From Schizochytrium sp. TIO01 (taxonomy: Eukaryota > Protista > Bigyra: Labyrinthulomycetes): a stretch of DNA of 64,000 nucleotides. Positions 1 through 29,155 of the stretch are shown one piece after another (the stretch's first letter is position 1; each line of letters begins with the position of its first letter). The notes beneath the pieces were generated by a model, which saw only the letters and a list, made by a program, of their open reading frames with translations, was not told where the DNA came from and made no database searches. The position numbers and the translations under genes are program-made. The stretch is from contig SMSO01000034.1 of the NCBI GenBank assembly GCA_004764695.1, positions 310,001-374,000 of the forward strand. Reading direction: 5' to 3'.

Positions 1-1751
1 GGCCTTAGGTCCTCCCGTAAAATACTTTTGATTCGCTCGAAGTCTCCCAATTTGACCGTCTCAAGTCTTGTGCGTTCCAAAATTCCTTGAGAGGAATCAA
101 TAACAACTTGTATGTCTTCTGTATATGCCACATGTAGAAGAGTTTTTACAATATCAAATGGAATTGCCTCGCGTGCTACACACAAAGCACACAAGAAGTC
201 CTTGCGCTTATTCCCGTCCGCACTGTTTTCATTTAGAAAATTATCCCTTAAACATGACTCGTAGATTTCCAGAGGTGATCGTGAATCTTCTGGTTGGTTT
301 GGTAGAGATGTCGTATCAAAGTCATACTGAGTAACAAAGTTGCTGGCTTCACCCATGTTCCCCCCACTTTTTCGCAGTGTCAAGGCTATCCATTCGTCAA
401 GGGGCTGGGTATTGGGATATTTCTCTTCGAGTCTAATTTTTGCGACCTGTTTGACATCTTGGTAATTGTTGGGTAATTGCGGGTCTAGAAGATGAACTAG
501 AGAATTTGACAAGATATCTTGTCTCTGACTAGACAGAATGAGGCCGACCCATTTGGGCAGCCTTTCGTTCCAATCATTTAAAAGTCGTTGAAGATCATCT
601 TTTCCTTCAGTGATGAAGTCAAAGCCATCAATAATGACCACAACATTGCGTTCACTTTTGACGCTTCCTAGTGGCTTAACAATAAATTCAGTGAAGATAA
701 CATCTAGTGTGACGCTCTCTAGCTCGGAAAAGTTTGTGAATGTTTCTGATACCGCTGTTATTTGATTACAGCAAGTTTGCACAGACTTCTGTAGTTGTTT
801 GGCAATGCTTAGCAAAACAAATTTCGCAGACTTATTTGAGGTACGCCCATGGGACTCTGCTTCTTCTGGGACAAAAAATGCTGCAGCGACTAGAATCGTT
901 GATGCAGACTTTGAGAATATTCCCTTCATCTTCTGGGAGAGGCGACGTAACGATAGTCGCCTGGATGCGTGTTGGGAGTCACGTTCCCAGTTCGAAAATG
1001 CTTTTGGATCTAGACATTGCGCAATTTTGTCTGGATTGAAGAATTCGCCGATGCCGCAGAGGGCAGCCAAGAACACAGATTTCCCCATTCCTTTATCTCC
1101 CGAGATGAGTAGAGAGTTTGAAAAAGGTTTTGAAGCCCATGTTTTAACAGCATTAAAGAGCCACGTTCGAGTATCCTCGATAAATTTGTAATAAAGGTCC
1201 TTAATTCTGGCCAAGTTTTTGGATTCATCCAACCCTACCAGAAGTGAGGCTCCAGCATCACTTTTAATACCTGCTTCGCGTTCCTTCATAATTGCATCGA
1301 AAATAAATCTCGCGGCTTCTCTGGCGTTGTTTTGATTTTCCTCAGCTATAGAATGGTACAACAATGGCGCCAATCGAAGGAGCCTGAGGCCCCAATTTTT
1401 TTGATCATGCATATTCGGATTTTGCACAACAGGAAAGACGGTTTTTTGCGAGTGATGTGTCAGCATCACATCAAATTCAAATGAACAATTTTGAAAGCTA
1501 CCTTCGTCATCCAACTTTTGTTGGTATTCCGTTGTGATGAAAACTACCATGTACTCGCTGTTTACGATGCCCTTGGCAATTTGTATATCAAGGCCGCGGC
1601 CAACCATTAGGTCGTTCATATCTTGCCAAACATCAAGGTTTAGCTTGCTAAGTTCTTCATAAACCATGCAGACAAACTTCTGACGTTCCCTGTTTGGTCC
1701 CCACGCATAGGATAAGAATATGTCCTTCGCAAAGGCTTCCGTTCGTGGCAT
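1..1751 (-). CDS. TIR-NACHT(-WD40) NLR-like protein, paralog A, 5' part (runs off window start)
   Basis: Collinear with no net indel to 23576-25326. Manual translation from ATG 1751 gives MPRTEAFAKDIFLSYAWGPNRERQKF...NCSFEF (TIR) and Walker A GDKGMGKS. It is missing from the ORF track because its stop lies outside the window. Confidence 0.88.
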   Translation of the reverse strand, partial: MPRTEAFAKDIFLSYAWGPNRERQKFVCMVYEELSKLNLDVWQDMNDLMVGRGLDIQIAKGIVNSEYMVVFITTEYQQKLDDEGSFQNCSFEFDVMLTHHSQKTVFPVVQNPNMHDQKNWGLRLLRLAPLLYHSIAEENQNNAREAARFIFDAIMKEREAGIKSDAGASLLVGLDESKNLARIKDLYYKFIEDTRTWLFNAVKTWASKPFSNSLLISGDKGMGKSVFLAALCGIGEFFNPDKIAQCLDPKAFSNWERDSQHASRRLSLRRLSQKMKGIFSKSASTILVAAAFFVPEEAESHGRTSNKSAKFVLLSIAKQLQKSVQTCCNQITAVSETFTNFSELESVTLDVIFTEFIVKPLGSVKSERNVVVIIDGFDFITEGKDDLQRLLNDWNERLPKWVGLILSSQRQDILSNSLVHLLDPQLPNNYQDVKQVAKIRLEEKYPNTQPLDEWIALTLRKSGGNMGEASNFVTQYDFDTTSLPNQPEDSRSPLEIYESCLRDNFLNENSADGNKRKDFLCALCVAREAIPFDIVKTLLHVAYTEDIQVVIDSSQGILERTRLETVKLGDFERIKSILREDLR

Positions 1752-3519
1752 ATTTACAGCCTTGCTTTAGCAGATATGATCTCGTCAATTCCCGGACTGG
1801 GCTCGCCTGTCTTCAAGGAGTTCTGCTGCAGCTTTGCACTTGCGTGAGGTATTTCAACCCAAGTAAAAGTTTTGACAGACTACTAATAGAATAAGTATAG
1901 AACTTTTGAAATAGCATTCAAAACGAGTAGTTAGTTTACGATATTACTGTGTAATTATAGGGTAGACACGATGGAGGAAGTCTGCAAAAGTTGTAGTGTA
2001 AAGCTGCTTTGTTGAAAAGTTGAGAACCCCAAATAGGAATAATGTTTTTGAAAAGAAAAATTATTCTTTTAAACTTAAAAAAACTCTAACTAAAATGACG
2101 AGTTTCTGAGAAGGGCCTAAGCTAGTTTTTTAAAAGAAAGTAATAGAATAGAAAGGTAAACCTTTAAAAAGAAAACAGATACTTATCTACTGATGGGTAA
2201 ACTAAGATACGTGCTTTTATCATATGGTTTTTGACTTGGCACGATTGATATTGGTAATTTCTTGGGATCGACGGCACCAAGTGATAGTAGATCAAACTAA
2301 TTGATGGTCTTAGTAACAACTGTTCTGGTTATCTTCAAATGGCGCGCGTGGTATTAAAAAAAAAATGGTTGCGCACTCTACAGATTCCCAAAATCTATGT
2401 CAATTTTGCATGACAGTGCTCTTTGTTAGCAACATTCAGGGAAACGGTCGAGCACGCACATCAGGTTACTACTAGCCTACTCTAGCACAATTTTTTTTTG
2501 TTAGAAGCTGTAATCGTTTGCAAACATAATCAATTAAAGCCACGATCTTTAGTGTTTGAAGATCTAGCTTGATCTTTTAGTTTCAGGTTTAGTCCAGATT
2601 TGATCATTCAAGTTTTTAATTTGGCTATACTAGACAGTTTGTTGATGGGGTCGATGGTTAGTCAGCAATGTAGTTATGTTGTAGCTCCTACTACCTTTTA
2701 AATTATATAATAAATTGTAAATATAAATATACAAATAATAATAATAATAGAATTTAAATCGACAGAATTTTCTAAGAGATCTAGCACAAATAAGTTAAGA
2801 AAAAGAACAAGAAATGACTTGACGACTTAAAGCATAAACATGCGTCTAGGTTCTCGACTTTTTGCAAAATCTTCAGACGCTACATTTAACGTAGTTTGGG
2901 CTTAAATAATAACTAGCTAGAGAACAAGGACATGTTGTAAGCCGGTCAATCCCGAAGTGAGGACCTGTGGAGTTTTAAACGAGCCTTAACGTGGGGAGAT
3001 GGCACTTCGTTCTTTAAATGTTCTAGGACGTATGGTGTATTTCTACCAATTCTATTCCTAACAATTATTTTGCTGGGTTAAACTCGCCTCTACAAATCGT
3101 CCATTTAGTACTCTAATAGACTCTGAATAGCGAGTATATCTTCATCCCCCACTTTCCCTCAGAACTGCGCAGAAACAACTCAGTTCCTCTTCAAATGCTT
3201 CATCATTATTATCCATGCAGTCCTTCTGCACGCGCGTGCTTGGTAGTCTGGTGCTTATTCGCAATCATAGTTTAATTTATATATTATGAGAATATGTTTT
3301 TTACTTTCTTAAAAAAGAAAAGAAAAGAATAATAATGAAGGATTGTTCAGACTCCTACATTTTAAATGCACAAAAAGCTTCTTTCTCTCAAGCATTTTCT
3401 TAACATCTTAAAATTTTAAACTTTATTCTTCTTTTTCGAAGAAAAAGGAAAGAAAAGATGAAAAACAAAATGAAAAATAAATTTACACTTTGGTTAGGAA
3501 GGGTGCACACGAAGGTTCT
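1..3519. repeat. Segmental duplication block 1 (copy A), paralogous to 23576-27058
   Basis: Near-identical coding sequence and clearly alignable upstream non-coding sequence, offset 23,575 bp in the coding part. Confidence 0.95.
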
Positions 3520-5711: not shown

Positions 5712-7556
5712 CTAATTGTTTTCGTCAGCCATTTCATGCTTCCGTGCTTTCCCCATAATTGCGAGATATACACGTCTTCGCATTGATCTTCTTGCAATTT
5801 GTTGTAAAGCTGGGTCTTCCAAACCCGAAAGTGTTGGTGTGCTCATACTACTTCTGCGCACGGATCTCCGGACCAATTCGACAAGAACAACGCCAACATG
5901 CTTTCCTTTTCGGACATTTTGTAGATCAGTTTTGGACCTTCTTTCATCTCTTCCAACGTCAAAAGGAACATACCCAGCTTTTTCATCGTTTTTGCCTCCA
6001 TCGAGCTTTCTGATTTTTTGTGCAAGTTCATACGGAAGCTCTAACGTATCGACCGAAGTATACATCACAAATAGCAAACGAGATCCTTTGCTGTTAGATA
6101 CTTGATCGGCAGGTTTATCCAGTTCCTTTTGTGCATAAGTAGCAAGGTGAACTGTAATTCGGATTTCGCCGAACATCATCAAGCTTTCACTTATAGACTG
6201 CAGAAAAAGTTCGAGTGATTCTTGGACATCAATTCTGACATTCTCACTTTCATCATTGCTAAGGGCATCACTTAACTCAGAGAACAGATCTTTTGCATCG
6301 TTAACTTTGCAACTTGCTTCGACATCTTTGGGATCACTTGTGTCTGCATTTTCAACACGACGTATGGTAAGAGGGAGATTAAGAGAAGTTTTGAAACCCC
6401 CCTTCCGTCTCGAATGTCCAAACTGAGTTTCAAGACAAACATCGAGAAACGGGAAGAACTCATCAGGCTCATCTAGTGTTGTATTGAGGAGCATAGAGAT
6501 GGTTACAAAGCGTTCACGGCCTGCCTCAGCTTTAGTTAGTATGTAGGTACATGACTCTGCAGTACATTTATCTGGTACCGGGGTCCAGGGTGATGGCATA
6601 TTCTTTTTCATCTTTCTCAGATCGATTTTGACTTTGCCTCGAGACTCTGCGGGAACCTTTAAAGTCAACGTATTCTTAAAGTTCACTCCAGTCTCCTCCT
6701 CATGTACAGAACCAATGACTTTCTCATGTTCCCAGGTCGTTATAAGTGTACCAGAGGTAGCTTTTGTTAGGTCTTTAAAGAATGACACTGCTTCTGCATC
6801 GCCATCAATGCTATACGCATTAAGCTCGAAAAAGAGAAACAAGGCTTGCTCTCTTTCAGCACTGTCGCTCTCAGAATATGCGTTCTCCATGCGATACTGT
6901 GCATGTTTGACTGATTTGATGACTTCTTCTGCATCAAATACGGCACCATCGCTGGAGATGTGAACCTCGAGGCGCACAGGCCTCAAAGATGAGTCATCAT
7001 CTTTCTTTTTTTCGAGTGTCTTGAGAAACTCAGTTTCCTGTTCCCAAAGACAATCAAAACCTTTGCTCATTTGAGTTCCACCATCAATCTCAAGAGCATT
7101 TACTTTCTTTATGATCTGTGGAATATTGGATGCTGTGAGCTTTTCGAATCCCTTGGTAACACACGTTGCCTCATCGCTAAACTTGATGACTGCAAGATAT
7201 ATGCTTTTTTTTTTGGTTCTTGGCTTGACTTTATTAATCCATTCTTCGAAACGCATCTTTGCGACATCAATCCGACGAAGAGGCTTTGGTGGTTCTCGTT
7301 CTTTTTCTTCATCAAGCTTTTCAACATCTGCAGCACCGTCAACACCCAGCTTTACCTGAGAGAACATACTGCCGCTAAAATCCATGATCCACGCAACTGC
7401 ATATGCACCAGTATCAAGATCATAAAGTCGATGTTTATAGTCGAGTCGAACGTTTATCTCGTCACCAGCTTGTTCTGCTTCTTCACGATAGGACGCTCTA
7501 AAAGTAGAAAAGAAATGATTAGAATCAGCAACAACCTTATTGTTCGATTTTGCCAT
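5712..7556 (-). CDS. vWA-domain protein (614 aa), intact MIDAS, with C-terminal beta/helical region and Arg/Ser-rich tail
   Basis: AVAWIMDFSGSM (DxSxS), GGTQMSKG (MIDAS Thr) and VHISSDG (MIDAS Asp); long open ORF with ATG start. Confidence 0.85.
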   Translation of the reverse strand: MAKSNNKVVADSNHFFSTFRASYREEAEQAGDEINVRLDYKHRLYDLDTGAYAVAWIMDFSGSMFSQVKLGVDGAADVEKLDEEKEREPPKPLRRIDVAKMRFEEWINKVKPRTKKKSIYLAVIKFSDEATCVTKGFEKLTASNIPQIIKKVNALEIDGGTQMSKGFDCLWEQETEFLKTLEKKKDDDSSLRPVRLEVHISSDGAVFDAEEVIKSVKHAQYRMENAYSESDSAEREQALFLFFELNAYSIDGDAEAVSFFKDLTKATSGTLITTWEHEKVIGSVHEEETGVNFKNTLTLKVPAESRGKVKIDLRKMKKNMPSPWTPVPDKCTAESCTYILTKAEAGRERFVTISMLLNTTLDEPDEFFPFLDVCLETQFGHSRRKGGFKTSLNLPLTIRRVENADTSDPKDVEASCKVNDAKDLFSELSDALSNDESENVRIDVQESLELFLQSISESLMMFGEIRITVHLATYAQKELDKPADQVSNSKGSRLLFVMYTSVDTLELPYELAQKIRKLDGGKNDEKAGYVPFDVGRDERRSKTDLQNVRKGKHVGVVLVELVRRSVRRSSMSTPTLSGLEDPALQQIARRSMRRRVYLAIMGKARKHEMADENN

Positions 7557-11838: not shown

Positions 11839-13857
11839 ATGGATTTAACCTCGCACTCGGGCAAAGCCAAAACGTCGAGTGAAGACAGTCAAACTTACCT
11901 CAAATATCAACTGTCAGATGACTCCTTCGTCACAGTTAGCATGGCCTACGAGTCAATTAAGGTTAAACGCGAAGAAGTTTCTCTCCGAGTCGTTACTGAT
12001 CCGGCACCTCCTGTTAAACACGAGATCACTAGTCAGGAATCAGGCTCTGTTCTTCTACTTGTCGTAGACACAAGTCGGTCAATGATTGATATTCAAGAGG
12101 ACCTGGCAGAGGAGTCAGGAGGCGGCTTCGCCACTCGAGGCGAGGTGGTCTTGGATGCCATTGACTCACTCATTGACGAGTGCCGCGACGAAGACGTGCT
12201 CGGTCTCGTCACCTTCGCTTACCAAAGCAAGGTCGTCTTTCCACTTGAGAACGCAAATGAAGACAATAAAAACGAATGGAAACGAAAGCTACGCGAAAAC
12301 ATCGAGTTCGCTGGAATGACAAACCTTGAAAATGGGATAATCAGTGCCGTGAGCCAACTTGAAGACCTTGATAAGGAAAGATACGCATCAGCATCAATCA
12401 TGATTATTTGTGATGGCTTTATCAACGCCGGTAAAGGCTTTGTCAATTCTATGGATGACGACAAGATCAAGGACGCCCAAAAAGAGCTCGCCGACTTCAC
12501 GAAAGAGTCATTTCAAGGAATTCAAGGAATTCAAGGTCTCAAAGTACGAGTTAGTGTCTGTGGTATTGGCGACGACTTCGACCGTGGAATGCTCCGCGAG
12601 ATGTGCAATACAGGGGCAGCAAGAGGACTGCCCTATTCTCTTGCACAGTCGAGCAAGCTCCTCGAGAAGATGAAGACAGCACTTTCGAAAACCTTGGAAC
12701 TTGAACGAATTCAACCTGCTGGACGAAGAAAGAAGAAGACCGTAGTCGCAAACGAGATGAAGATTCGAATTGAGCTACACCAAGGCGCTAGCCTGGACAT
12801 AGGAAAACATAGAAAACTATTAAGAAAAGGCAACAAGAAATCTGAGGGTATGAAAAAGATCTCATTGGACCCTTTTGACGATGGCTATCAGAGCATTACG
12901 TTCTCTCCTTTACCAGAGAAGGCAATGATCGACATACCTGTTCTGCTTGGCCCTGCTGATGGTCTTGGAGAGCGTGATGATACAGGTCAGCCTATTATGC
13001 CCCGACTTCCAAATACCAGAAACATGTACAGAATCGCTACAATCTATGCGTTATGGCCCAAGAAAGAAGAGAAAGGGCACATCGATGTAGTCCGAAAGGG
13101 GGGTGAATCAATACTAGACGAACAGATTCAAAGATTAAACAAGATTCAAGACACGATGGGCGGTCTGATCAGCACTCTGCGTAAGGTTTCAGGCATGGAT
13201 GAAATGGAGGCCGTACAAGAAGAAACCATTGTCGAAACTGAGAGCGAACTGGATTCTACGCAAGTAGATACAGTCCAAAAGTTAGAGGAGATTTTAGCAC
13301 TACATAAGTCGTTTACCAAAAAGCTGGACAATGGTAACTTTACGCAAAAGGAAGTTGACGAAGTTCTTCAGAGCAAGGAGATGCTGTCGAATTTGATAGA
13401 TATGTTTGTATCTGTGAGGAAAGCGATAAGCTATGTTTTTAATCTGAAGGAAGATCTGAAGAAAACGGACGCAGATGAGTATGTCTTAGGGTGTGATTTT
13501 GCAGGTTTCTGTGACCTTCTTTGTTCCTCTTTGGAAACAGGGCTGGGCAATACAGGTCTAGATACAGATGGTACGGGCGGCGGCGACCAGGCAGATACGA
13601 ATGATACAGATAGCAAGGGCGGCAGCGACCAGAAAGATATGAATGAGCTGTTAATGAAGGCAAAGGAAGCTCTTGGTGCTGTTATGGCAGGGCTTGAGAA
13701 TGCAATTGAAGACGGTATTGTTGAAAAGCTGCGAAGACAAATAGAAGACCAGGAAGACGAGCAAAAGAGGGGACATCCTCCACCCAAGCGATTATCTTCT
13801 AGAATTCGAGATTCCTTGAAAAGACTTTCCAGGTCTTCCAAAAGGGGGGACAGCTAA
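11839..13857 (+). CDS. vWA-domain protein, tandem copy 1 (MIDAS intact) with beta-rich domain and acidic helical C-terminus
   Basis: LLLVVDTSRSM (DxSxS), AGMTNLENG (Thr) and IMIICDG (Asp). First ATG is at 11839; the ORF track uses the TTG at 11830. Confidence 0.88.
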   Translation: MDLTSHSGKAKTSSEDSQTYLKYQLSDDSFVTVSMAYESIKVKREEVSLRVVTDPAPPVKHEITSQESGSVLLLVVDTSRSMIDIQEDLAEESGGGFATRGEVVLDAIDSLIDECRDEDVLGLVTFAYQSKVVFPLENANEDNKNEWKRKLRENIEFAGMTNLENGIISAVSQLEDLDKERYASASIMIICDGFINAGKGFVNSMDDDKIKDAQKELADFTKESFQGIQGIQGLKVRVSVCGIGDDFDRGMLREMCNTGAARGLPYSLAQSSKLLEKMKTALSKTLELERIQPAGRRKKKTVVANEMKIRIELHQGASLDIGKHRKLLRKGNKKSEGMKKISLDPFDDGYQSITFSPLPEKAMIDIPVLLGPADGLGERDDTGQPIMPRLPNTRNMYRIATIYALWPKKEEKGHIDVVRKGGESILDEQIQRLNKIQDTMGGLISTLRKVSGMDEMEAVQEETIVETESELDSTQVDTVQKLEEILALHKSFTKKLDNGNFTQKEVDEVLQSKEMLSNLIDMFVSVRKAISYVFNLKEDLKKTDADEYVLGCDFAGFCDLLCSSLETGLGNTGLDTDGTGGGDQADTNDTDSKGGSDQKDMNELLMKAKEALGAVMAGLENAIEDGIVEKLRRQIEDQEDEQKRGHPPPKRLSSRIRDSLKRLSRSSKRGDS

Positions 13858-17448: not shown

Positions 17449-19470
17449 ATGGATCTAACCTCGCGCTCGGGCAAAGCCAAAACGTCGAGTGAAGACAGTC
17501 AAACTTACCTCAAATATCAATTGTCAGATGACTCCTTCGTCACAGTTAGCATGCCCTACGAGTCAATTGATGTTGAATCCGAACAAGTTTCTCTTCGAGT
17601 CGTTACTGATCCGGCACCTCCTGTTGTTGCACACGAGATCACTAGTCAGGAGGACGAAATAGGCTCTGTTCTTCTACTTGTCGTAGCCACAAGTCGGTCA
17701 ATGATTGATTTTCAAGAGGGCCTGGCAGAGGAGTCAGAAGACAGCTTCGCCACCCGAGGCGAGGTGGTCTTGGATGCCATTGACTCACTCATTGACGAGT
17801 GCCGCGACGAAGACGTGCTCGGTCTCGTCACGTTTGCGAGTCGAAGCAAGGTCGTCTTTCCACTTCAGAACGCAAATGAAGACAAAAAGAAAGAATGGAA
17901 ACGAAAGCTTCGGCGTGATATTGCGTTTGGCGGGAGGGAAAATCTTGAAAATGGGATAATCAGTGCCGTGAGCCAACTTGAAGACCTTGATAAGGAAAGA
18001 TACGCATCAGCATCAATCATGATTATTTGTGATGGCTTTATCAACGCCGGTAAAGGCTTTATCAATTCTTTGAATGACGACAAGATCAAGGCTGCCCAAA
18101 AAGAGCTCGTCGACTTCACAAAAGAGTCATTGCAAGGAATTCAAGGTCTCAAAGTACGAGTTAGTGTCTGTGGTATTGCCGACGACTTTGACCGTGGAAT
18201 GCTCCGCGAGATGTGCAAGACAGGGGCGGCAGGAGGACTGCCCTATTCTCTTGCACAGCCGAGCAAGCTCCTCGAGAAGATGAAGACAGCACTTTCGAAA
18301 ACCTTGGAACTTGAACGAATTCAACCTGCTGGACGAAGAAAGAAGAAGACCGTAGTCGCAAACGAGATGAAGATTCGAATTGAGCTACACCAAGGCGCTA
18401 GCCTGAGCATATTAGAACTTAGAAGACTATTAAGAAAAGGCAACAAGAAATCTGAGGGTATGAAAAAGATCTCATTGGATCCTGTTGACGATGGCGATCA
18501 GAGCATTACGTTCTCTCCTTTACCAGAGAAGGCAATGGTCGACATACCTGTTCTGCTTGGCCCTGCTGATGGTCTTGGAGAGCGTGATGATACAGGTCAG
18601 AATATTATGCCCCTCCTTCCAAATACCAAGAACATGTACAGAATCGCTACAATCTATGCATTATGGCTCAAGGATAATGAGGTAATTGAGAAAGAAGTGA
18701 AAGGGTACATCGATGTAGTCAGAAAGGGGAATCAATCGATACTAGACGAACAGATTCAAAGATTAAACGAGATTCAAGACACGATGGGCGGTCTGATCGC
18801 TACTCTACGTGAGGTTTCAGGCATGGACGAAATGGAGGCCGATCGAGAAGAAACCATTGCCGAAACTGAGAGCGAACTGAATTCTACGCAAGTAGATACA
18901 GTCCAAAATTTAGAGGAGATCTTAGAACTACATAAGTCGCTTACCAAAAAGCTGGACAATGGCAACTTTACGCAAAGGGAAGTTGACGAAGTTCTTCAGA
19001 GCAAGGAGATGCTGTCGAATTTGATAGATATGTTTGTAGCTGGGTGGAAAGCGATAGACTATGTTTTAAAACTGAAGAAAGATCTGGAGAAAGCGGACGC
19101 AGATGAGTATGTCTTAGGGTGTGATTTTGCAGGTTTTTTTGACCTTCTTTGTTCCTCTTTGGAAACAGGGCTGGGTGATACAGGTCTAGATACAGATGGT
19201 ACGGGCGGCAGCGACCAGAAAGATATGAATGAGCTGTTAAAGGAGGCGAAGAAAGCTCTTGATGCTGTTATGGCAGGGCTTGAGAATGCAATTGAAGACG
19301 GCATTGTTCAAAGTCTGGTAGCCGACTTAGAGCGGAAAGGTGCAGGCATTGAAGACCAGGAAGACGAGCAAAAGAGAGGATATCCTGCACCCAAGCGATT
19401 ATCTTCTAGAATTCGAGATTCCTTGAAGAGACTTTCCAGGTCTTCCAAAAGGGGGGACAGCCAACGTTGA
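17449..19470 (+). CDS. vWA-domain protein, tandem copy 3 (MIDAS degenerate, mosaic of copies 1 and 2)
   Basis: Paralog with LLLVVATSRSM and GGRENLENG; ATG at 17449. Confidence 0.86.
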   Translation: MDLTSRSGKAKTSSEDSQTYLKYQLSDDSFVTVSMPYESIDVESEQVSLRVVTDPAPPVVAHEITSQEDEIGSVLLLVVATSRSMIDFQEGLAEESEDSFATRGEVVLDAIDSLIDECRDEDVLGLVTFASRSKVVFPLQNANEDKKKEWKRKLRRDIAFGGRENLENGIISAVSQLEDLDKERYASASIMIICDGFINAGKGFINSLNDDKIKAAQKELVDFTKESLQGIQGLKVRVSVCGIADDFDRGMLREMCKTGAAGGLPYSLAQPSKLLEKMKTALSKTLELERIQPAGRRKKKTVVANEMKIRIELHQGASLSILELRRLLRKGNKKSEGMKKISLDPVDDGDQSITFSPLPEKAMVDIPVLLGPADGLGERDDTGQNIMPLLPNTKNMYRIATIYALWLKDNEVIEKEVKGYIDVVRKGNQSILDEQIQRLNEIQDTMGGLIATLREVSGMDEMEADREETIAETESELNSTQVDTVQNLEEILELHKSLTKKLDNGNFTQREVDEVLQSKEMLSNLIDMFVAGWKAIDYVLKLKKDLEKADADEYVLGCDFAGFFDLLCSSLETGLGDTGLDTDGTGGSDQKDMNELLKEAKKALDAVMAGLENAIEDGIVQSLVADLERKGAGIEDQEDEQKRGYPAPKRLSSRIRDSLKRLSRSSKRGDSQR

Positions 19471-19879: not shown

Positions 19880-21360
19880 GTTAATAGTAGATATTACAGT
19901 GAAGCTGAAAGCTTTAAAAGAATACTACCTACCTGGTTTTATTTGCTACAAGCCTTAACTACGGAACTGGCGCGCTGATGATGAATGCGTCCAGGCTTTC
20001 GCCGAGCAGAGCTATATGTAATGAAAGAAGAGCTGATTTTCTCAGCCACGAACGAAGAACAGTCCTCCACTGTGTTGGCAAAGTTTTGCGATGGATTTAT
20101 TACAACAGGGGTTGGATTTTTGCGTGACAAGACATGATATCAAGATGCTAATCAAGAACTCATCCAGATGATCAGGAGTAGTTTGACAGATGAGGGTCTG
20201 AAAGATGTGAGTGTGTCCATTCACTGCTGCGGCATTCGGACTGACTTTTATAGAAGGCTTGTGAGTCAGATTTCCCAAGATTGTGGAAATGGAGAAGGTT
20301 TCGCTACACCCGAAGAACAAGTGAACCAAACGGAAGGATTTTTATCCACCATATTGAAGAATGAAAGGCGCTCGTCCAAAGCAGGGGGGCGGATTAGTGT
20401 CCAATTTTATCGCAGAGGAAGGGTTGATCTTATTCTCCCCTGCAATGTTCGCTTCGACCAAACTTGTATAAAAATTAAAACGATCAGGTAAAATAAAGAG
20501 TATCTAATCACACCTCAAAAGTTGGATTCAGGCCAAGCCATTTCATTCTCAATGCAAGTGCTGCGAGTAGAAAATGTCAAGCTTCTTCGATATTCCTTGG
20601 AAGGTTGCGAGCATGTGGGATCAATTGCCTATGTGAGACGCAGGATATGCAAGCGCGACCACCAAAAGTATATCCGGCGTCAAACTACTAGAGTGCACAG
20701 TGAAATTGCCACAACGATGGAAGATCAGAGTCTGTACCAAGACGAACAGCAAATTCTTAATTCAAAGAAGCCAGCCCTGTCTAAACTAGAATCATTGAAA
20801 AGGGACTTGGGTAAGAGTGTGAAACTTGCAAAAACAATAGATCCCGATTCTGTAAAGCGTCTAGGCGAAACTAAGATTATACTGGAAAAGGCCATAGATG
20901 CTATTAAGGATGCTGCTCAGAAATGTGATAACGCCAATGACTCAGAAGAAAAACTAACGCTAGATTTTCATCTAAGTTCACGATTCCAAACCTTGGCTGA
21001 TGTGCTTCGCGCAGAAACGTCTTCCTTTTTAGTGCTGGTATTTAACAAAAAACAAGATCGGGAAGTTGTCCAAAATGTACCAGTGCGACACCTTACTGTA
21101 AGCTGTTGAACAAGAACTTAAGGATCTGGAAGACATACATCGCGTCGGAAACTTTACCGAAAGAGCAATACAAGAACAACAATTTGACAATCATAAGCAA
21201 ACAGCCTGTGAGTGACGTGAGGAGCCTCGTAGGGAGCTCAAACAAGAAGGGTTTCTCAACCGGACATCGATGAAGGACAAAATCTCGGGGCGATGGAGTT
21301 AACCGAGACGACGATCCCGACAGCACGGAAACCCGACAAAATCGACGTGGAACGACTAGT
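19880..21360 (+). pseudogene. Divergent vWA-family pseudogene
   Basis: ORFs 19709, 20168 and 20522 share one frame, split by in-frame stops (TGA 19976-19984, TGA 20135, TAA 20489). FCDGFITTGVGFL..*YQDANQELIQM..GLKDVSVSIHCCGIRTDFYRRLV matches ICDGFINAGKGFV..KDAQKELADF..GLKVRVSVCGIGDDFDRGML of the array genes. Ends are approximate. Confidence 0.72.
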
Positions 21361-21582: not shown

Positions 21583-24500
21583 TTAATAAGAGCTGTTCTT
21601 CACAATCTTTAACATAGATAGAGTACTACTTCCTGCAACAAAACCGTAAAACCTTGTCTCTGATGCTGTCCAGTGACTTATATTGTCATCAAAAGTAAAG
21701 CTTGAAGTCATAGGATGTTGCACGTGCCCGCCCTGGACATGCCAATTTTCAGGCCGATCTCTCTTCCAATCACATTTGGAGACTATCGCTTGATCAACAG
21801 GTTCAATGGATTTCCTATCTTCGAGTATGTGCCAGCCACCACATTTCACCCCATCTTGGTTTTTTGCCAGCAAAATGTCCTCTGACAGACAGAGATCAGT
21901 GGCTATGAAGGTCAGTTTTCGCGAAGCAAGCTCTGCAAGAGAGTTCAAATTCCATATTTTGAGGACTTTGTCACTAGATGCAGTTGCAAACCAGTCGGTC
22001 GCAACAACGATCGAGGTGATCTTGTCTCCATGAGCATCGACGATACACATCTCTGCTTTTTCTTCTCCTTTGGAACGCTCCCAGACTCGTATGCCTCCTT
22101 TGCAATCCCCACTCAAAATATACTCAGGAGCTAGTGCAAGGCACGAGGATGGTGCTACGTGACGACTGATATTGTCATCTCTACCCAAGGGCAACATAGA
22201 AAGCCGTCCTACTCGAAGCTGGCCATTTTCGTATCCAATAACACTTCGCTCCTTTGGACTTAGCGCAACACTCGTTACAGCTAAGTTACTTTCTACGAGT
22301 CCAGTGCACTTGATTGCCTCAAGATCTGTAAGGTCCCAGCTGCAAACAGTTCCATCTTCTGATCCACTTAGTAGGAAAAGTTTCGTTCTAAATTCACGAA
22401 TAGAGAGGGATGAAATACGACCTAAATGTAGAAGCTCGCCTTCCTGCGAAATGCGATGAGCAGAAGCAGTCTGATTCGACGATTTGCTTGAAGTATCATC
22501 ACTCTGGTCCTCGATTTTCCACACAGAAATTTCTCCTTTCTCATTCCCCACAATGATTAAACTTTCACCATACATAACAAATGCAGTACACACCGCAGAT
22601 CCCAAACCTTGCAACACCCTTGTGCAGCATTCCGAATCACTCTGGTGAAGGTCCCAGCTAAGAATCTGAAAATCTTCGGTGGCTACAAATATCGACTTTG
22701 AAGTCATTGCTACACCAACAATAATTTTTTTTGTATCAAATTCTCTTCGGGGCTTGTGGTCCTCACTTGAGTGATCCCATAGAGTTACACAGCCGTCTAA
22801 TGATCCACTCACCAGATATTTTGAATCCATTGCCATACATGTGATATCCATGTCATGCCTGCTAGGAAACTCCTTCTGGTTTAATTCTGTTGGTGTGTAA
22901 ACACGGATTAGCCGACCTTCTTCACCGCTAAACGCACATGCAAATGCGACTTCCCCATTGCTTTCTGAAGAACACATAGCTAAGCATGTTGGTATCATAT
23001 CGATCTCAAGGTGGAAGAGTTTCTCACCAGTGTAGATATTCCACGCATTGACCTGCTCGTCATCTTCCGATAAGGAAATAAAAAGGTTGGCCGCAGCTGC
23101 AAGACCCGTTACACCATCGTGATGCTTTCCGCTTAAAGTGTACAGAAAGGAGCCCTGGGTGGTTGAACTAACTGGCATAAGTTCATCATAGGAAAGGCTG
23201 TGCTGGCCTTCTGCACCTGTGTATAAAGGATGCTCTTTCGACATCCGACAAAGAATTTGGGTCCGAAGTTGACGAGAGTCGAAAATAAGTGCGTCAGTAT
23301 TTTGCACAAGAAAATCAATTGTTGTGATCGCAGCAGAGTGTTCCTTTGGAGCAATAGAGCGATATTGTTCAAGGTCTTTGTTCCACAGTGTGACATCTAC
23401 ACCCTGTTGCACAATCGCCCCATAGATCTTGTCATAATCTACTAGGTATCTGGCGAGATCTTCCAATCGATTTGCCTCAAGCAGATGGTATATTGCATGT
23501 TTAGCGCTAAAGAGACACGTTGATACCCTATCTTGACAAAGCTCAGCTAAAAGCGCATGGCCCTTTGCCAAAATTGGCCTTAGGTCCTCCCGTAAAATAC
23601 TTTTGATTCGCATGAAGTCTCCCAATTTGACCGTCTCAAGGCTTGTGCGTTCCAAAATTCCTTGGGAGGAATCAATAACAACTTGTATGTCTTCTGTATA
23701 TGCCACATGTAGAAGAGTTTTTACAATATCAAATGGAATTGACTCGCGTGCTACACACAAAGCACACAAGAAGTTCTTGCGCTTATTCCCGTCCGCACTG
23801 TTTTCATTTAGAAAATTATCCCTTAAACATGACTCGTAGATTTCCTGAGGTGATCGTGAATGTTCTGGTTCGTTTGGTAGAGATGTCGTATCAAAGTCAT
23901 TCTGAGTAACAAAGTTGCTGGCTTCACCCATGTTCCCCCCACTTTTTCGCAGTGTCAAGGCTATCCATTCGTCAAGGGGCTGGGTATTGGGATATTTCTC
24001 TTCGAGTCTAATTTTTGCGACCTGTTTGACATCTTGGTCATTGTTGGGTAATTGCGGGTCTAGAAGATGAACTAGAGAATTTGACAAGATATCTTGTCTC
24101 TGACTAGACAGAATGAGGCCAACCCATTCGGGCAGCCTTTCGTTCCAATCATTTAAAAGTCGTTGAAGGTCATCTTTTCCTTCAGTGATGAAGTCAAAGC
24201 CATCAATAATGACCACAACATTGTGTTCACTTTTAACGCTTCCTAGTGGCTTAACAATAAATTCAGTGAAGATAACATCTAGTGCGACGCTCTCTAGCTC
24301 GGAAAAGTTTGTGAATGTTTCTGATACCGCTGTTATTTGATTACAGCAAGTTTGCACAGACTTCTGTAGTTGTTTGGCAATGCTTAGCAAAACAAATTTC
24401 GCAGACTTATTTGAGGTGCGCCCATGGGACTCTGCTTCTTCTGGGACAAAAAATGCTGCAGCGACTAGAATTCTTGATTCAGACTTTGAGAATATTTCCT

Positions 24501-25326
24501 TCATTTTCTGGGAGAGGCGACGTAACGATAGACGCCGGGGTGCGTGTTGGGAGTCACGTTCCCAGTTTGAAAATGATTTTGAATCTAGACATTGCGCAAT
24601 TTTGTCTGGATTGAAGAATTCGCCGATGCCGCAGAGGGCAGCCAAGAACACAGATTTCCCCATTCCTTTATCTCCCGAGATGAGTAGAGAGTTTGAAAAA
24701 GGTTTTGAAGCCCATGTTTTAACAGCATGAAAGAGCCACGTTCGAGTATCCTCGATAAATTTGTGATAAAGGTCCTTAATTCTGGCCAAGTTTGTGGATT
24801 CATCCAACCCTATCAGAAGTGAGGCTCCAGCATCACTTTTAATTCCTGCTTCACGTTCTTTCCTAATTGCATCGAAGATATATTGCGCGGCTTTTCTGGC
24901 GTCGTCTTGATTCTCCTGATCTATAGAATAGTGCAACAATGGCGCCAATCGAAGGAGCTTGAGGCCCCAATTTTTTTGATCATTCATTATCGGATCTTGC
25001 ACAATAGGAAAGACTTTTTTTGGCGAGCAATGTGTCAGGATCACATTAAATTCAAATGAACAATTTTGAAAGCTACCTTCGTCATCCAACTTTTGTTGGT
25101 ATTCCGTTGTGATGAAAATTACAATATACTCGCTGCTGTTGATGCCCTTGGCAATTTGTTTATCAAGGCCGCCGCCAACCATTAGGTCGTTCATATCTTG
25201 CCAAACATCAAGGTTTAGCTTGGTAAGTTCTTCATAAACCATGCAGACAAACTTCTGATGTTCGCTGTTTGGTCCCCACGCATAGGATAAGAATATGTCC
25301 TTCGCAAAGGCTTCCGTTCGTGGCAT
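21583..25326 (-). CDS. TIR-NACHT(STAND NTPase)-WD40 NLR-like protein, paralog B (~1247 aa)
   Basis: TIR: IFLSYAW, VWQD, IAKGINSSEYIVIFIT, NCSFEF (putative catalytic Glu). NACHT: TRTWLF, Walker A SGDKGMGKS, Walker B VVVIIDGFD. WD40: LVSGSLDGCVTLWD, LLSGSEDGTVCSWD, ATASSDKVLKIWN. First ATG is 25326; the track uses GTG 25332. Confidence 0.92.
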   Translation of the reverse strand: MPRTEAFAKDIFLSYAWGPNSEHQKFVCMVYEELTKLNLDVWQDMNDLMVGGGLDKQIAKGINSSEYIVIFITTEYQQKLDDEGSFQNCSFEFNVILTHCSPKKVFPIVQDPIMNDQKNWGLKLLRLAPLLHYSIDQENQDDARKAAQYIFDAIRKEREAGIKSDAGASLLIGLDESTNLARIKDLYHKFIEDTRTWLFHAVKTWASKPFSNSLLISGDKGMGKSVFLAALCGIGEFFNPDKIAQCLDSKSFSNWERDSQHAPRRLSLRRLSQKMKEIFSKSESRILVAAAFFVPEEAESHGRTSNKSAKFVLLSIAKQLQKSVQTCCNQITAVSETFTNFSELESVALDVIFTEFIVKPLGSVKSEHNVVVIIDGFDFITEGKDDLQRLLNDWNERLPEWVGLILSSQRQDILSNSLVHLLDPQLPNNDQDVKQVAKIRLEEKYPNTQPLDEWIALTLRKSGGNMGEASNFVTQNDFDTTSLPNEPEHSRSPQEIYESCLRDNFLNENSADGNKRKNFLCALCVARESIPFDIVKTLLHVAYTEDIQVVIDSSQGILERTSLETVKLGDFMRIKSILREDLRPILAKGHALLAELCQDRVSTCLFSAKHAIYHLLEANRLEDLARYLVDYDKIYGAIVQQGVDVTLWNKDLEQYRSIAPKEHSAAITTIDFLVQNTDALIFDSRQLRTQILCRMSKEHPLYTGAEGQHSLSYDELMPVSSTTQGSFLYTLSGKHHDGVTGLAAAANLFISLSEDDEQVNAWNIYTGEKLFHLEIDMIPTCLAMCSSESNGEVAFACAFSGEEGRLIRVYTPTELNQKEFPSRHDMDITCMAMDSKYLVSGSLDGCVTLWDHSSEDHKPRREFDTKKIIVGVAMTSKSIFVATEDFQILSWDLHQSDSECCTRVLQGLGSAVCTAFVMYGESLIIVGNEKGEISVWKIEDQSDDTSSKSSNQTASAHRISQEGELLHLGRISSLSIREFRTKLFLLSGSEDGTVCSWDLTDLEAIKCTGLVESNLAVTSVALSPKERSVIGYENGQLRVGRLSMLPLGRDDNISRHVAPSSCLALAPEYILSGDCKGGIRVWERSKGEEKAEMCIVDAHGDKITSIVVATDWFATASSDKVLKIWNLNSLAELASRKLTFIATDLCLSEDILLAKNQDGVKCGGWHILEDRKSIEPVDQAIVSKCDWKRDRPENWHVQGGHVQHPMTSSFTFDDNISHWTASETRFYGFVAGSSTLSMLKIVKNSSY

Positions 25327-27417
25327 GTTCACAGCCTTGCTTTATCAGATACGATCTCGTCAATTCCCGGACTGGGCTCGCCCGTCGTCAAGGAGTTCTG
25401 CTGCAGCTTTGCACTTGCGTGAGGTATTTCAACCCAAGTAAAAGTTTTGACAGACTACTAATAGAATAAGTATAGAACTTTTCAAATAGCATTCAAAACT
25501 AATAGTTGGACTACGATATTACTGAGTAATACAGGGTAGAAAGTTTTTCTGATATTAATTAGTGTAAACTTGGTTGGTTGAAAAGTTAAGAACCCCAAAT
25601 AGGAATAATGTCTTTTAATAGACATATTTTCCTTTTCTTAAAAAAACTCTAACTAAAATGACGAGTTTTTAAGAAGGGCCTATGCTAGTTTTAAAAAAGA
25701 AAGTATTAGAATAGAAAGGTAAGAAAACAGATACTTGGCTACCGATAGGTAAACTAAGATACGTGCTTTTATCATATGGTTTTTGACTTAGCACGATTGA
25801 TATTGGTGATTTCTTGAGGTCGACGGCACCAGGTGATAGTAGATCAAACTAATTGATGGTCTTAGTAGTAATTGTTATGGATATCTTCAAATGGTGCGCG
25901 TGGTATTAAAAAAAAATGGTTGCGCACTCTACAGATTCCCAGAATCTATGTCAATTTTGTAAGACAAGTGCTCTTTGTTAGCAACATTCAGGTAAGCGGT
26001 CGAACACGCACATTATATTACTACTAGTCTACTCTAGCACATGTTTTTTTTTGTTTTTTTTTCCTTTTGTTAGAAGCTGTAATCGCTTGCAGACATAAAA
26101 TCAATTAAAGCCAGGTATTCATGACGATCTTTAGTGTTTCAGGATCTAGCTTGATCTTAAAGTTTCAGTTTTGGTCCAGATTTGATCATTCGGTTTTCTA
26201 ATTTGGCTATATTAGACAGTTTGTTGATGGGGTCGATGGTTAGTCAGCATTGTAGTTATGTTGTAGCTCCTACTACCTTTTAAATTATATAATAAATTGT
26301 AAATATAAATATACAAATAGTAATAATAATAGAATTTAAATCGACAGAATTTTCTAAGAGTCTAGCACAAATAAGTTAAGAAAAAGAACAAGAAATGACT
26401 TGACGACTTAAAGCATAAACGTGCGTCTAGGTGCTCGCCTTTTTGCAAAATCTGCAGAAGCTACATTCAACGTAGTTTGAGTTTAAGAAATGGCCAGACA
26501 AGGACACATTGTAAGCTCGTCAATCCCGAGGTGAGGACCCGTGGCGTTTTAAACGAGCCTTAAAGTGGGGAGATGGCACTTCATTCTTTAAATGTTCTAG
26601 GACGTATGATGTATTTCTACCAATTCTATTCCTAACAATTCTATTGCCGGGTTAAACTCGCCTCTACAAATCGTCAATTTAGTATACTCTAATAGTGTAT
26701 TTTCACCCTCTTTTTCCTCACGACTGCACAGAAACAACTCAGTTCCTCTTCAAAAGCTTCATCAGTCTTATCCATGCAGTCCTTGTGCACGCGCTTGCTT
26801 GGTAGTCTGGTGGTTATTTGCGATCATAATATAATCTATTTGTTATAAGAATATGTTTCTACTTTCTGTAAAAAAAGAGTAATCATGAAGGTTTGTTCAG
26901 ACTCCTGCATTTTCAATGCAAAAAGCCTCTTACTCCCGAGTATTTTCTCAAAGTTTAAAATTTAAAACATTTCTTTTTATATTAAGAAGAAAAAGAGAAG
27001 AAACGGAGAAAAACAAAATTACACTTTGGTTAGGACGCGCGCACCCGGAGGTTCTCGAGTCTTGCGGAAACTGCGGTTATATTTTTAAGATCAAGAGCGC
27101 TAAGAGCTCATTACGCTATTCAATAGTTCTAAAAATGAATATTTCAAGGGGCATGAGAAAAGTCAAGATTTTCAAAACCGGGCGCGTTTCGGGGTAATTG
27201 ATTTCGGGCGGAAACGCTAATAAACAGTCGACACAATCAGGCACGCAGCGATGTCGGCTGGAAGTACTGGTTTGGATCGTGTGCACCCCCTGAGCTGGTA
27301 TTAAATCCCTCAAAATTTAGGCAAATGTGTGTAATGGTGTGATAATTGGAAGCATCGGTTTGGCCAAGTTCAATGTTCATTATTTAAGAATAATAATGAT
27401 AATTATTTATTTATTTG

Positions 27418-27463
<46 letters not shown>

Positions 27464-27690
27464 AACAGAATTATCAGTGATTCTGGTTGGGTTTAAATTA
27501 ATTTCCCAATTTTACATATGAATGATCAGATAATCGCAGTTACATCCGAACCAGGTCATTCGCCATATTGGGAATGCCTGTGCTTTAATCAGTACCTCTA
27601 TTCAGACAGAAAGCTCCGAGTCCCGTAGCAGCATTGCTTCCGGTTTGCCGCCAACCAAAAGTGTCACTCGCACATACCTGAAAACAACTA
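23576..27690. repeat. Segmental duplication copy B (blocks 1 and 2 fused)
   Basis: Matches 1-3519 and then 8264-8903 with no intervening sequence. Confidence 0.93.
27418..27461 (+). repeat. Poly-A tract (44 nt), absent from the paralogous block near 8660
   Basis: Seen directly in the sequence. Confidence 0.9.
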
Positions 27691-27699
27691 CTGCAACGC

Positions 27700-28860
27700 G
27701 CCGTGAGTAAACTTAAAAAGCTTGATAAGGAAAAATAGGCACCAGCGTCAATCATGATTCTTCGTTATGGCAATATCAACCCTGGTAAAGGCGTTGTCAA
27801 TTCATTTGTTGTTGCAAGGAGTTGAAGGTCTCAAAGTGCGAGTTAGTATCTATGGTATTGGCGATGACTTTGACCGTAAAATGCTCTGCTGGATGTAGGG
27901 GGCAGCAAGAAGCCAGCCCTATTCTCTTGCGCAGTTGAGCACGAGTATGAAGACGGCACTTTCGAAAACCTTGAGCTTGAACGAACTTACCCTGCTGCAC
28001 CAAGAAAGGAGAAGAGCCTACTCGCAGACGAGACGAAGGTTCGAATTGAGCTACACCAAATCGCTACCCTGAACATAGGAAAATTCCGAAGACTATTGAG
28101 AAGACGCGACAAAAACAAACCTGAGGGTAAGAAAACGATTTCATTGGATGATTTGGGCGATTATGATCAGAGCACTACGTTCTGGCTTTCACCAGAGAAG
28201 TCAATGATAGACATACCTGTTCTGCTTGGCCCTGCTGATGGTCTTGGAGAGCATGATGAAGGTCAGGATTTTATGCCCCGACTTCTAAATGCCGCGAACA
28301 TGTACAGAATTGCTACAATCTATGCGTCATGGCTCGAAGATAATGAGGTAAGTGAGGAAGAAGTGAAAGGGTACATTGATGTAGTCAGAAAGGGGAGTGA
28401 ATCGATACTAGAGAGACAGATTCAAAGATTAAACCAGATACAAGACACGATAGGCGGTCTGATCGGTGTTCTACGTCAAGTTTCGGGTATGGACGAACTG
28501 GAGGCCGTACAAGAAGAACTCGAGCTGAAACTGAGAGCGAGCTGGATTCTACGCAAGCAGAGACAACCCAAAAGTTAGAAAGGATTAGCACTATATAAGT
28601 CGTTCACCAAAAACTTGGACAAAGGCAACTTTACGCAAAGGGAAGTTGAAGAGGTTCTCCAGAGCGAGTAGACGTTGTCGTATTTGATAGATATGTTTGT
28701 AGCTGGAAGCAAAGCGATGGTCTATGTTGATAAACTGAAGAAAGATCTGAAGGGGTCGGATGCAGATGAGTATCTCTTAGGGTGTGATTTGGCAAGTTTC
28801 TTTGACCTTCTTTGTTGCTCTTTGGAAACAGAGCTGGGCAATGCAGTTCGAGATTCAGCA
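27700..28860 (+). pseudogene. 5'-truncated, frameshifted vWA array pseudogene
   Basis: Aligns to the array genes from ..gccgtgag..aactt onward, with stops (e.g. TAC>TAG ~27735, TAG ~28668), deletions and frameshifts. The downstream flank 28860-28955 matches the copy 3 flank at 19530-19625. Confidence 0.9.
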
Positions 28861-29155
28861 ACAGCAGAGATCACGAAGTCCATAACGGAGAGGACGGCCA
28901 ATGTGTAAAGCCCGCATTCCGGGAAATAAATAAGCAAAGTGAATCTTTCCTTTTAATTTCTTTCTTTTAAAAAATACTTTAAAATGTCAGATGCTTTACT
29001 TTGCTGGTGTTGAATTTCTATCTCGCAGCAATTGCCTTTGATGATGAAAAAATGCGGAAAGGGATTCGCCTGGATCGAATGCACTTACTAATGGCTCGTC
29101 AGAACAAACGACCCACACCCTGAATCAGCCATCTATCACAGCATGCTATGCTACA

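Follow-up and report, generated by a model that had tools for sequence, protein, structure and literature searches.

Several described systems combine the domains considered here. TIR-STAND receptors (plant TNLs, bacterial TIR-NACHT/Avs-like proteins and SARM1-type TIR NADases) have a TIR domain at the N terminus with a conserved Glu at the C-x-x-E position, followed by a P-loop STAND NTPase and then by repeats that presumably act as the sensor, and they undergo tandem birth and death. Fungal HET-E/NWD proteins of the NACHT-WD40 type form fast-evolving clusters and offer a precedent for an NLR working with an adjoining gene. The TEP1/NWD family joins a TeTIR or DUF4062 domain to NACHT and WD40, and TEP1 also carries TROVE and vWA (bioRxiv 10.64898/2026.09.21.753143; 10.64898/2026.05.01.722283). 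In the bacterial vWA-MoxR/iSTAND ternary conflict systems, the gene for a MIDAS-bearing vWA protein is linked in the genome with those for an NTPase and for death-type effector domains, among them TIR and sometimes NACHT (Kaur et al. 2020, PMC7159879).

In Schizochytrium sp. TIO01, we found a locus in which three TIR-NACHT-WD40 genes (NLR0, NLR1 and NLR2) are interleaved with two lineage-specific intracellular vWA families (types v and X). Positions refer to the window, the whole stretch of 64,000 nucleotides that was analysed, and DNA upstream of it has negative numbers. The three NLRs share the TIR-STAND organization described above, including the tandem birth and death, although their NTPase is a NACHT (NPHP3_N type) and not NB-ARC, their repeats are WD40 and not LRR, the host is a unicellular stramenopile and the NADase activity is predicted. 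Unlike in fungal HET-E/NWD proteins, the WD40 repeats are not homogenised, since no DNA-level tandem repeat was found in the WD40 region. With the bacterial conflict systems the locus shares a MIDAS-bearing vWA protein adjoining an NTPase with a TIR effector, as well as diversifying components; in contrast, it has neither a MoxR AAA+ ATPase nor VMAP, consists of separate eukaryotic genes and not an operon, and contains two vWA families. Every ATG-started ORF of at least 150 aa from -12516 to 29000 was an NLR, an X, a v or without a Pfam match, so that no MoxR ATPase lies beside the vWA genes, and the adjacent STAND protein with the TIR effector is of the NACHT-WD40 type, not VMAP or iSTAND. 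PADLOC gave no match for X and v. From these sequence comparisons we tentatively propose, as a quite possible reading, that the NLR and vWA proteins function together in a copied three-gene thraustochytrid module.

The sequence-only reading had described NLR-like genes with TIR, STAND NTPase and WD40 parts, and profile searches confirmed this description, with TIR_2, NPHP3_N and WD40 models above cut-off. NLR2 (21583-25326, minus strand; 1247 aa from the ATG) matched TIR_2 (E 1.7e-11), NPHP3_N/NACHT (1.3e-8) and many WD40 propeller models, and its approximate parts are the TIR domain at 24913-25290, the Walker A motif (GMGKS) at 24652-24675, the NACHT and helical part at 23650-24730 and the WD40 region at 21757-23214. 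The 5' part of NLR1 (1-1751, minus strand, 583 codons comprising TIR and NACHT; 3-1757 and 585 codons as the copy of NLR2) opens the window and is 91% identical to NLR2, and the remainder extends to -2085; the truncation is due only to the window edge, and the gene is continuous in the genome as an ORF of 1278 aa (G000:C33:307915-311751). NLR0 lies upstream of the window, 9-12 kb from its start, and is far closer in sequence to NLR1 and NLR2 than any other paralogue (E 2.9e-76 vs 5e-30 for the next). NPHP3_N was above cut-off in all three, and Walker A (GMGKS, 221-225), Walker B D375 and Glu92 are invariant among these proteins, which share only 28-31% identity. The codon 25051-25053 (minus strand), singled out earlier as that of a putative catalytic Glu, corresponds to Glu92, in the context CSFEF common to the three NLRs. 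The TIR domain has its nearest relatives among the bacterial NADase TIRs (AbTIR and PdTIR, for example) in PDB alignments, which stop at residue 79, so that Glu92 is assigned as the candidate catalytic residue by motif position only. A PADLOC match to bSEFIR/ThsB points the same way. The WD40 propeller models span residues from about 705 to 1190, and the WD40 part (about 550 aa) probably forms two propellers. The predicted architecture supports the assignment of NLR0, NLR1 and NLR2 as NLR-like immune receptors, namely TIR-NACHT-WD40 STAND NTPases. TIR receptor genes are also plentiful elsewhere in the same genome.

Six vWA loci, four intact and two pseudogenes, had been counted from the sequence; the counts stand, but the fourth intact locus (5712-7556) belongs to the separate, very divergent family X. 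Type v comprises vWA-A (11839-13857; 672 aa), vWA-B (14641-16641; 666 aa) and vWA-C (17449-19470; 673 aa), all on the plus strand, together with v0 upstream of the window and the two pseudogenes. VWA_2 and VWA were above cut-off in vWA-A, vWA-B and vWA-C, which are 81-87% identical to one another. The MIDAS motif (DxSxS...T...D) is retained in vWA-A (DTSRS, GMT, CDG), v0, X0 and X1, whereas its D and T are gone in vWA-B (ATSRS, T to E) and likewise in vWA-C, the frame of vWA-B being kept. X1 (5712-7556, minus strand; 614 aa) gave no match of its own in the Pfam search. It is nevertheless a vWA protein: its MIDAS DxSxS is intact, the DxSxS, GGT and SDG motifs of the X family are in register in the alignments, the upstream member X0 matches VWA at E 2.9e-4, and the top structural matches of the X1 AlphaFold model are vWA structures (4fx5, ArnB, ITIH1). 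Models bear out the vWA fold for both v0 and X1, and the v and X proteins alike have a vWA domain, a beta-sandwich and a long helical tail that terminates in a basic segment rich in Ser and Arg, although model confidence is low outside the vWA domain. In fold, X1 and v0 most resemble ArnB, the Sec23-24 'core motif' and 4fx5-type vWA plus beta-sandwich proteins (Foldseek E 1e-12 to 1e-13), but at an identity of only 12-16% and in comparisons based on models whose mean pLDDT is 58; the long helical tail and basic C-terminus have no recognisable counterpart in those proteins. The 64 Mb genome has only two X copies, X0 and X1, and type v is confined to this locus bar one weak match. One pseudogene (20027-21109, plus strand), of the v0 type, aligns with v0 residues 128-490 at 34% identity, is missing the N-terminal MIDAS part and is interrupted by several stops. 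Its orientation is convergent with NLR2, mirroring v0 with respect to NLR1. The other (27700-28857, plus strand), of the vWA-A type, lacks the first ~170 codons and has frame breaks and two TAG stops.

The genes are arranged in blocks. An ordered block of NLR (minus), X (minus) and v (plus) is present twice, and one of the two, NLR0-X0-v0, is a third, old unit of the locus, which thus reaches beyond the window on its upstream side. The identity between the blocks is alike for the three genes (NLR0/NLR1, 28%; X0/X1, 30%; v0/vWA-A, 35%), at about 30% of the protein sequence, indicating a matched old divergence of all three, and X1 and its same-unit partners vWA-A, vWA-B and vWA-C are both on long branches. 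The NLR-plus-v part was copied again recently: the DNA from -2085 to 3519 matches 21583-27055 at 91-94%, including the non-coding regions upstream of NLR1 (1752-3519) and NLR2 (25327-27055), 12523-13567 matches 27815-28858 at 81%, and the non-coding stretch 8274-8903 matches 27076-27694 at 73%. This last homology joins the NLR and a vWA gene in one duplicated unit, and the earlier proposal that the two were copied as one unit is thus upheld by DNA-level matches, with NLR and vWA genes duplicated as blocks twice. The X1-bearing stretch 3519-8274 is missing from the NLR2 copy, and NLR2 is intact although X is gone from its unit and the v gene there is a pseudogene. The vWA genes also form tandem 2.8-kb units, which are mosaics (100% identity of 13741-13863 and 16525-16647, 88% elsewhere; local dS from 0 to 0.57). 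Birth-and-death evolution by tandem amplification, mosaics and pseudogenes, which the sequence-only reading had recognised, therefore holds, and the MIDAS motifs lost from vWA-B and vWA-C belong to the same pattern. The adjoining DNA contains a further tandem family, with five genes of the 7TM type (31317-41298). A search of the long spacers revealed no transposon-like repeats, and the base composition of the locus is not unusual.

The genes of the locus are real and under selection. Between NLR1 and NLR2, the coding divergence was 3.6% vs 11.2% in the duplicated flank; all four NLR coding indels and all vWA coding indels in three pairwise alignments were multiples of three, whereas most of the 16 indels in the flank (1752-3519 and 25327-27055) were not. 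Under neutral random substitution, the probability of finding no stop was 0.004. The dN/dS values were 0.87 for the NLR (1.6 for TIR) and 0.7-1.1 for the vWA genes, values near 1 that would also be expected from relaxed constraint, and the excess of non-synonymous changes in TIR (32 vs 5 synonymous) appears too small for significance by a rough estimate. Selection thus acts on the two NLR copies and on the three vWA copies alike, keeping open frames while amino acids change fast.

If the NLR and vWA proteins do act together, the WD40 propellers would keep the NLR inactive until a signal arrives, and oligomerisation of NACHT would then bring the TIR domains together for NAD+ cleavage, with Glu92 as the candidate catalytic residue. 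Cooperation with the NLR would most likely involve a MIDAS-dependent hetero-complex of X and v, serving either as an adaptor or as the partner that the NLR senses or guards. The copies that have lost the MIDAS, vWA-B and vWA-C, would be decoys or regulators, and NLR2, which no longer has an X and v of its own, would rely in trans on the proteins of the adjacent unit. A genome-wide enrichment of vWA genes next to NLRs, a point raised in the sequence-only reading, does not serve as an independent test. Among 16 NPHP3_N and 33 VWA_2 loci, the two occur together at this locus only, and the other 13 NPHP3_N loci had no VWA_2 match within 400 kb. The three NLRs here are copies of one another, and the NLR-vWA adjacency is therefore one evolutionary event.

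X and v may instead be the real conserved functional pair, with the NLRs as unrelated neighbours carried along by regional duplication, which we regard as possible but rather doubtful. X and v form a divergently transcribed pair in both blocks. A profile search of 1.8 billion representatives recovered full-length X and v relatives from Hondaea fermentalgiana only, where GBG30633 (X), GBG30635 (v), GBG30636 (X) and GBG30637 (v) are near-consecutive and alternate on one 57-kb contig, so that the X/v pairing is conserved between the genera. No Hondaea protein matched the NLR profile in a word-indexed search, which is insensitive; the survival of NLR2 without its own X and v, and the general rarity of functional gene order in eukaryotes, also favour an independent pair. 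However, the NLR-X-v order has been held in two blocks whose age is reflected in an identity of about 30%, and the NLR clade is confined to this locus just as X and v are; the Hondaea comparison covered the four X and v genes, and an NLR may lie at GBG30634 or beside the cluster. Against the three-gene module, X and v are themselves distant paralogues, and their adjacency may be a relic of tandem duplication.

That there is no functional link at all, and that fast-evolving, dispensable families were amplified and decayed together in a region that is unstable and prone to duplication, about 300 kb from a contig end, seems unlikely. The tandem 2.8-kb units, the mosaics, the two pseudogenes, the MIDAS loss, the dN/dS near 1 and the adjoining 7TM-type family would fit such a region, but the frames were kept against the neutral expectation, the X/v clustering is conserved between genera and the long spacers lack transposon-like repeats.

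We consider it improbable that vWA proteins of giant viruses are the source of X and v, or the model that they mimic, with the NLR monitoring them in a module of virus-related origin. The nearest protein-language-model clusters to vWA-A and X0 consisted of VWFA proteins from Nucleocytoviricota, 550-690 aa long (183-185 features in common, scores 0.95-0.96), although the Atlas of these clusters cautions that its taxa do not indicate gene transfer, and the best BFVD fold matches were vWA proteins of Pithovirus, Klosneuvirus and Yasminevirus, with about 500 columns aligned. Against such an origin, the sequence similarity to a giant-virus MAG protein (27%) ends at the vWA domain, beyond which model confidence is low, no viral relative of X was found and the base composition is ordinary.

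The locus resembles the TEP1/NWD family in the order of a TIR-like domain, NACHT and WD40 and in an associated vWA domain, and the sequence-only reading had offered a 'split TEP1-like' module. This is largely refuted, as the TIR is a canonical TIR_2, TROVE had no match in the whole genome and the vWA proteins, on separate chains, resemble ArnB/4fx5/ITIH-type vWA plus beta-sandwich proteins and not Ro/TEP1. DUF4062 matched none of these NLRs, with nothing listed for NLR1 even at an E-value limit of 10 (HMMER filters drop most matches above about 0.1), while it was above cut-off at four other genome loci (C35, C34, C30 and C5), on two of which (C30 and C5) an NPHP3_N/NACHT match lies about 1 kb from the DUF4062 gene; no VWA_2 match lies within 170 kb of the DUF4062 genes. 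Descent from, or equivalence to, the animal TROVE-vWA-TeTIR-NACHT-WD40 protein is therefore highly improbable, despite the same broad domain set, the NPHP3_N type of the NACHT and a short Beta-prop_TEP1_C match in NLR1 and NLR2 (43.7-44.5 bits vs a cut-off of 32; 22.2 in NLR0). TEP1_2nd, at 58 bits vs a cut-off of 89, also speaks against it. Generic WD40 models scored higher than the TEP1 propeller models.

A broader form of the proposed NLR-vWA cooperation would make the locus a labyrinthulomycete-specific innate immune module of three components, the equivalent in eukaryotes of bacterial vWA-NTPase conflict systems, in which a TIR-NACHT-WD40 switch is paired with a giant-virus-like X/v hetero-complex of co-sensors or guarded viral mimics, with the MIDAS-dead members as decoys; we think this distinctly unlikely. 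To our knowledge, almost nothing is known of cell-autonomous immunity in heterotrophic stramenopiles. Labyrinthulomycetes host large DNA viruses, and thraustochytrids are culturable and transformable, which should make the host amenable to bench work. The X and v families are new in themselves, occurring in two genera only among 1.8 billion representative proteins and resembling giant-virus vWA proteins. If the link between the NLR and vWA genes is merely historical, the locus is a clean instance of birth-and-death evolution in a protist NLR cluster; if the NLR and X/v proteins do cooperate, it would represent an NLR of a eukaryote that depends on vWA partners encoded by other genes, linking plant-like TIR-STAND signalling to bacterial vWA-NTPase conflict logic.

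The map of the locus was based on an ORF listing, Pfam matches and an all-against-all BLAST of the window plus 30 kb upstream (positions 310001-374000 of contig C33 and the adjoining DNA; the genome, G000, has 64 Mb in 37 contigs). Every gene described here is a single long ORF starting at its first ATG, and spliced models were not used. The sequence-only reading had noticed TIR-NACHT-WD40 genes (NLRs) interleaved with vWA genes. This observation was confirmed and could be extended: the vWA proteins belong to two families, v and the divergent X, and a third, old unit, NLR0-X0-v0, was found directly upstream of the window at C33:297485-306000 (window -12516 to -4000, negative numbers being upstream; fetched stretches L004 and L002). 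NLR0 (-12516..-8800, 1238 aa) and X0 (-7743..-5575, L002:2260-4425, 722 aa) are on the minus strand and v0 (-4004..-2181, 607 aa) on the plus strand. They are followed by NLR1 (-2085..1751, 1278 aa) and X1 (5712..7556, 614 aa), both on the minus strand, and by three plus-strand v genes, vWA-A (11839..13857, 672 aa), vWA-B (14641..16641, 666 aa) and vWA-C (17449..19470, 673 aa). A v0-type pseudogene (20027..21109, plus), NLR2 (21583..25326, minus, 1247 aa) and a vWA-A-type pseudogene (27700..28857, plus) complete the locus. NLR0 was taken as its start because the nearest gene further upstream is a purF-like housekeeping gene at about -18267. The long spacers 3519-5711 and 8903-11838 occur as single copies and contain no remnant of the NLR, X or v families. 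Just beyond the other end of the locus, a 143-bp tandem repeat occurs twice (29190-29460, 96% match), and five tandem paralogous genes of 374-435 aa with 29-50% mutual identity occupy 31317-41298.

Pfam finds TIR_2, NPHP3_N (NACHT) and a WD40 region of about 550 aa in all three NLR proteins, and the Walker A motif (GMGKS), Glu92 and the Asp of Walker B are invariant among them. The codon at 25051-25053, which had been singled out earlier as that of the putative catalytic Glu, encodes Glu92 of NLR2. NLR0 shares only 28-31% identity with NLR1 and NLR2, and it is their closest paralogue in the genome. The TIR of the NLRs is most similar to the bacterial NADase TIRs AbTIR, PdTIR and Cat1 (bSEFIR/ThsB in PADLOC); PADLOC and NCBIfam matched the NLRs at the TIR level only and gave no useful match for X or v. 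A word-indexed homologue search with residues 1-700 of NLR2 and scans of bacterial and archaeal genomes with the NLR gave no match, and the matches of an insensitive profile search were all distant, at 20-30% identity, and comprised HEPN/NACHT/WD40 and TIR-NACHT-TPR proteins. NLR0, NLR1 and NLR2 are assigned to the broad TIR-STAND receptor kind. More than 12 other ORFs of about 845-875 aa in the genome match the NLR TIR at 30-35% identity (for example, C32:39525, C7:37510, C8:69339, C30:12323 and 62372, and C34:2812627), several of them near contig ends.

Type v (v0 and vWA-A/B/C) passes Pfam VWA and VWA_2, whereas in type X only X0 matches VWA (E 2.9e-4) and X1 has no match. The DxSxS, GGT and SDG of X align in register with the vWA motifs, and a profile-profile comparison of X with type v gave an E of 0.0019. 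The structures that AlphaFold predicts for v0 and X1 (mean pLDDT 58, about 80 in the vWA part) have the same parts, namely short N-terminal strands, the vWA domain, a beta-sandwich, and long helices over about 200 aa, and the first structures matched by both are 4fx5, ArnB ('Sec23/24 core motif') and ITIH1. The MIDAS is kept in vWA-A, v0, X0 and X1; vWA-B and vWA-C have lost it, with D changed to A and T to E. A basic Ser/Arg-rich C-terminal stretch is common to both families. X0 and two X proteins of the thraustochytrid Hondaea fermentalgiana (P0003 and P0007) end in a Cys-rich tail, CxCDxxCxCGGxxGGCxGDCxC, which X1 lacks and which could be a metal-binding or lipidation site. A complex prediction of X0 (45-445) with v0 (1-352), run without alignments or controls, gave no answer (its score was nil).

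It had also been proposed that NLR and vWA genes were copied as one unit, and the DNA matches bear this out. The recent duplication relates -2085..3519 to 21583..27055 at 91-94%, 8274-8903 to 27076-27694 at 73%, and the 3' two-thirds of vWA-A to 27815-28858 at 81%, so that NLR, spacer and v gene were copied together; the copy afterwards lost the X-carrying stretch (3519-8274) and the 5' part of its v gene. A poly(A) run of 48 bases (27418-27465) lies just 5' of the truncated vWA pseudogene, within the 27076-27694 segment. An older duplication is seen in NLR0-X0-v0 and NLR1-X1-vWA-A, which have the same order and orientation with protein identities of 28% (NLR0/NLR1), 30% (X0/X1) and 35% (v0/vWA-A). 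The genes vWA-A/B/C form 2.8-kb tandem units with mosaic identity, and the v0-type pseudogene is convergent to NLR2 as v0 is to NLR1. In the phylogenetic tree, X and v were separated with full support and the branches of X1 and vWA-A/B/C were long, and the order of the duplications relative to Hondaea was left unresolved by the tree.

The coding sequences of NLR1 and NLR2 differ at 134 of 3741 sites and by four indels (3, 66, 12 and 18), all in frame, whereas the duplicated DNA upstream of them differs at 190 of 1697 sites and by 16 indels, most of which are not multiples of 3. When 134 substitutions were placed at random, the NLR ORF remained open in 0.4% of the trials; the vWA genes showed the same pattern in both tests. 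The dN/dS, from small counts, was 0.87 for the whole NLR (TIR 1.6, NACHT 0.66, WD40 0.82) and 0.7-1.1 for the vWA pairs, and the excess in the TIR is not significant by estimate, without a formal test. The reading frames are preserved while the amino acids evolve rapidly, a pattern that fits diversifying genes and equally a mix of constraint and relaxation. Because the NLR dS (0.04) is below the divergence of the flanks (0.11), gene conversion within the coding parts is suggested. In contigs of other strains or studies over C33:305901-311850 (stretch L006; runs X6, X12, X18 and X20), v0 is about 1.3% and NLR1 about 4% diverged, with in-frame differences of 66, 18 and 12 bases, the sizes of NLR1-NLR2 indels, in mixed combinations. 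These suggest exchange between NLR1 and NLR2 alleles and may be paralogue or gene-conversion alleles rather than independent polymorphism. In one of the four runs, the contig depth on v0 and NLR1 differs 8-fold, which hints at no more than RNA (the RNA status of the runs being a guess) or an unequal copy number.

The genome has 16 NPHP3_N and 33 VWA_2 loci in all. Since both occur together only at this locus, and X and type v are each confined to it (apart from one weak match of type v), the NLR-vWA association is exclusive, but it amounts to a single evolutionary event. The other vWA clusters examined are unrelated to NLRs: one on C36 encodes a 968-aa vWA protein, and C31:3327241-3359859 (L025-L028) carries five tandem PAN and vWA genes, two also with long PT repeats, which look like extracellular adhesins. 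Outside the genome, a profile of the six X/v proteins searched against 1.8 billion representatives found two proteins of same-species contigs and then only four full-length relatives, all from one contig of H. fermentalgiana. There, X (GBG30633, GBG30636) and v (GBG30635, GBG30637) alternate within the near-consecutive accessions GBG30633-30637, which shows conservation of the X/v pairing across genera. The insensitive NLR-profile search had no Hondaea protein among its matches. The main alternative, in which X and v alone belong together and the NLR just lies next to them, is judged somewhat less likely than joint action of the NLR and vWA proteins.

Among known systems, the TEP1 family is defined by TeTIR/DUF4062 (bioRxiv 10.64898/2026.09.21.753143; 10.64898/2026.05.01.722283). 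The idea of a 'split TEP1', with NLR and vWA on separate chains, was rejected because the NLRs lack DUF4062 and are not strictly TEP1-like, four genuine DUF4062 (TeTIR-like) genes lie elsewhere in the genome (C30:7355551-7356996, C5:174736-176094, C35:948840 and C34:3277488), and the whole genome yielded no TROVE domain. Those four genes have no vWA neighbours and look like NWD/TEP1-like proteins, and the ones on C30 and C5 also carry an NPHP3_N/NACHT match. The bacterial vWA-MoxR ternary systems (PMC7159879) share with the locus the idea of combining vWA, an NTPase and a death effector, but their MoxR and VMAP are absent here. The reading as a conflict locus is plausible, and we infer, tentatively, that the NLR and vWA proteins possibly act together.

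A word-indexed search with vWA-A found no homologue. In metagenomes, X had no match and v matched generic vWA domains only; X had a single generic vWA match in scans of bacterial and archaeal genomes and none in scans of viral contigs. In the viral contig scans, one protein from a giant-virus MAG was similar, in the vWA domain only. By language model, the clusters closest to vWA-A and X0 consist of giant-virus VWFA proteins comparable in length, and giant-virus vWA proteins are also the best viral matches by fold. At the sequence level the likeness is confined to the vWA domain, and the giant-virus likeness of vWA-A and X0 is a lead worth following.
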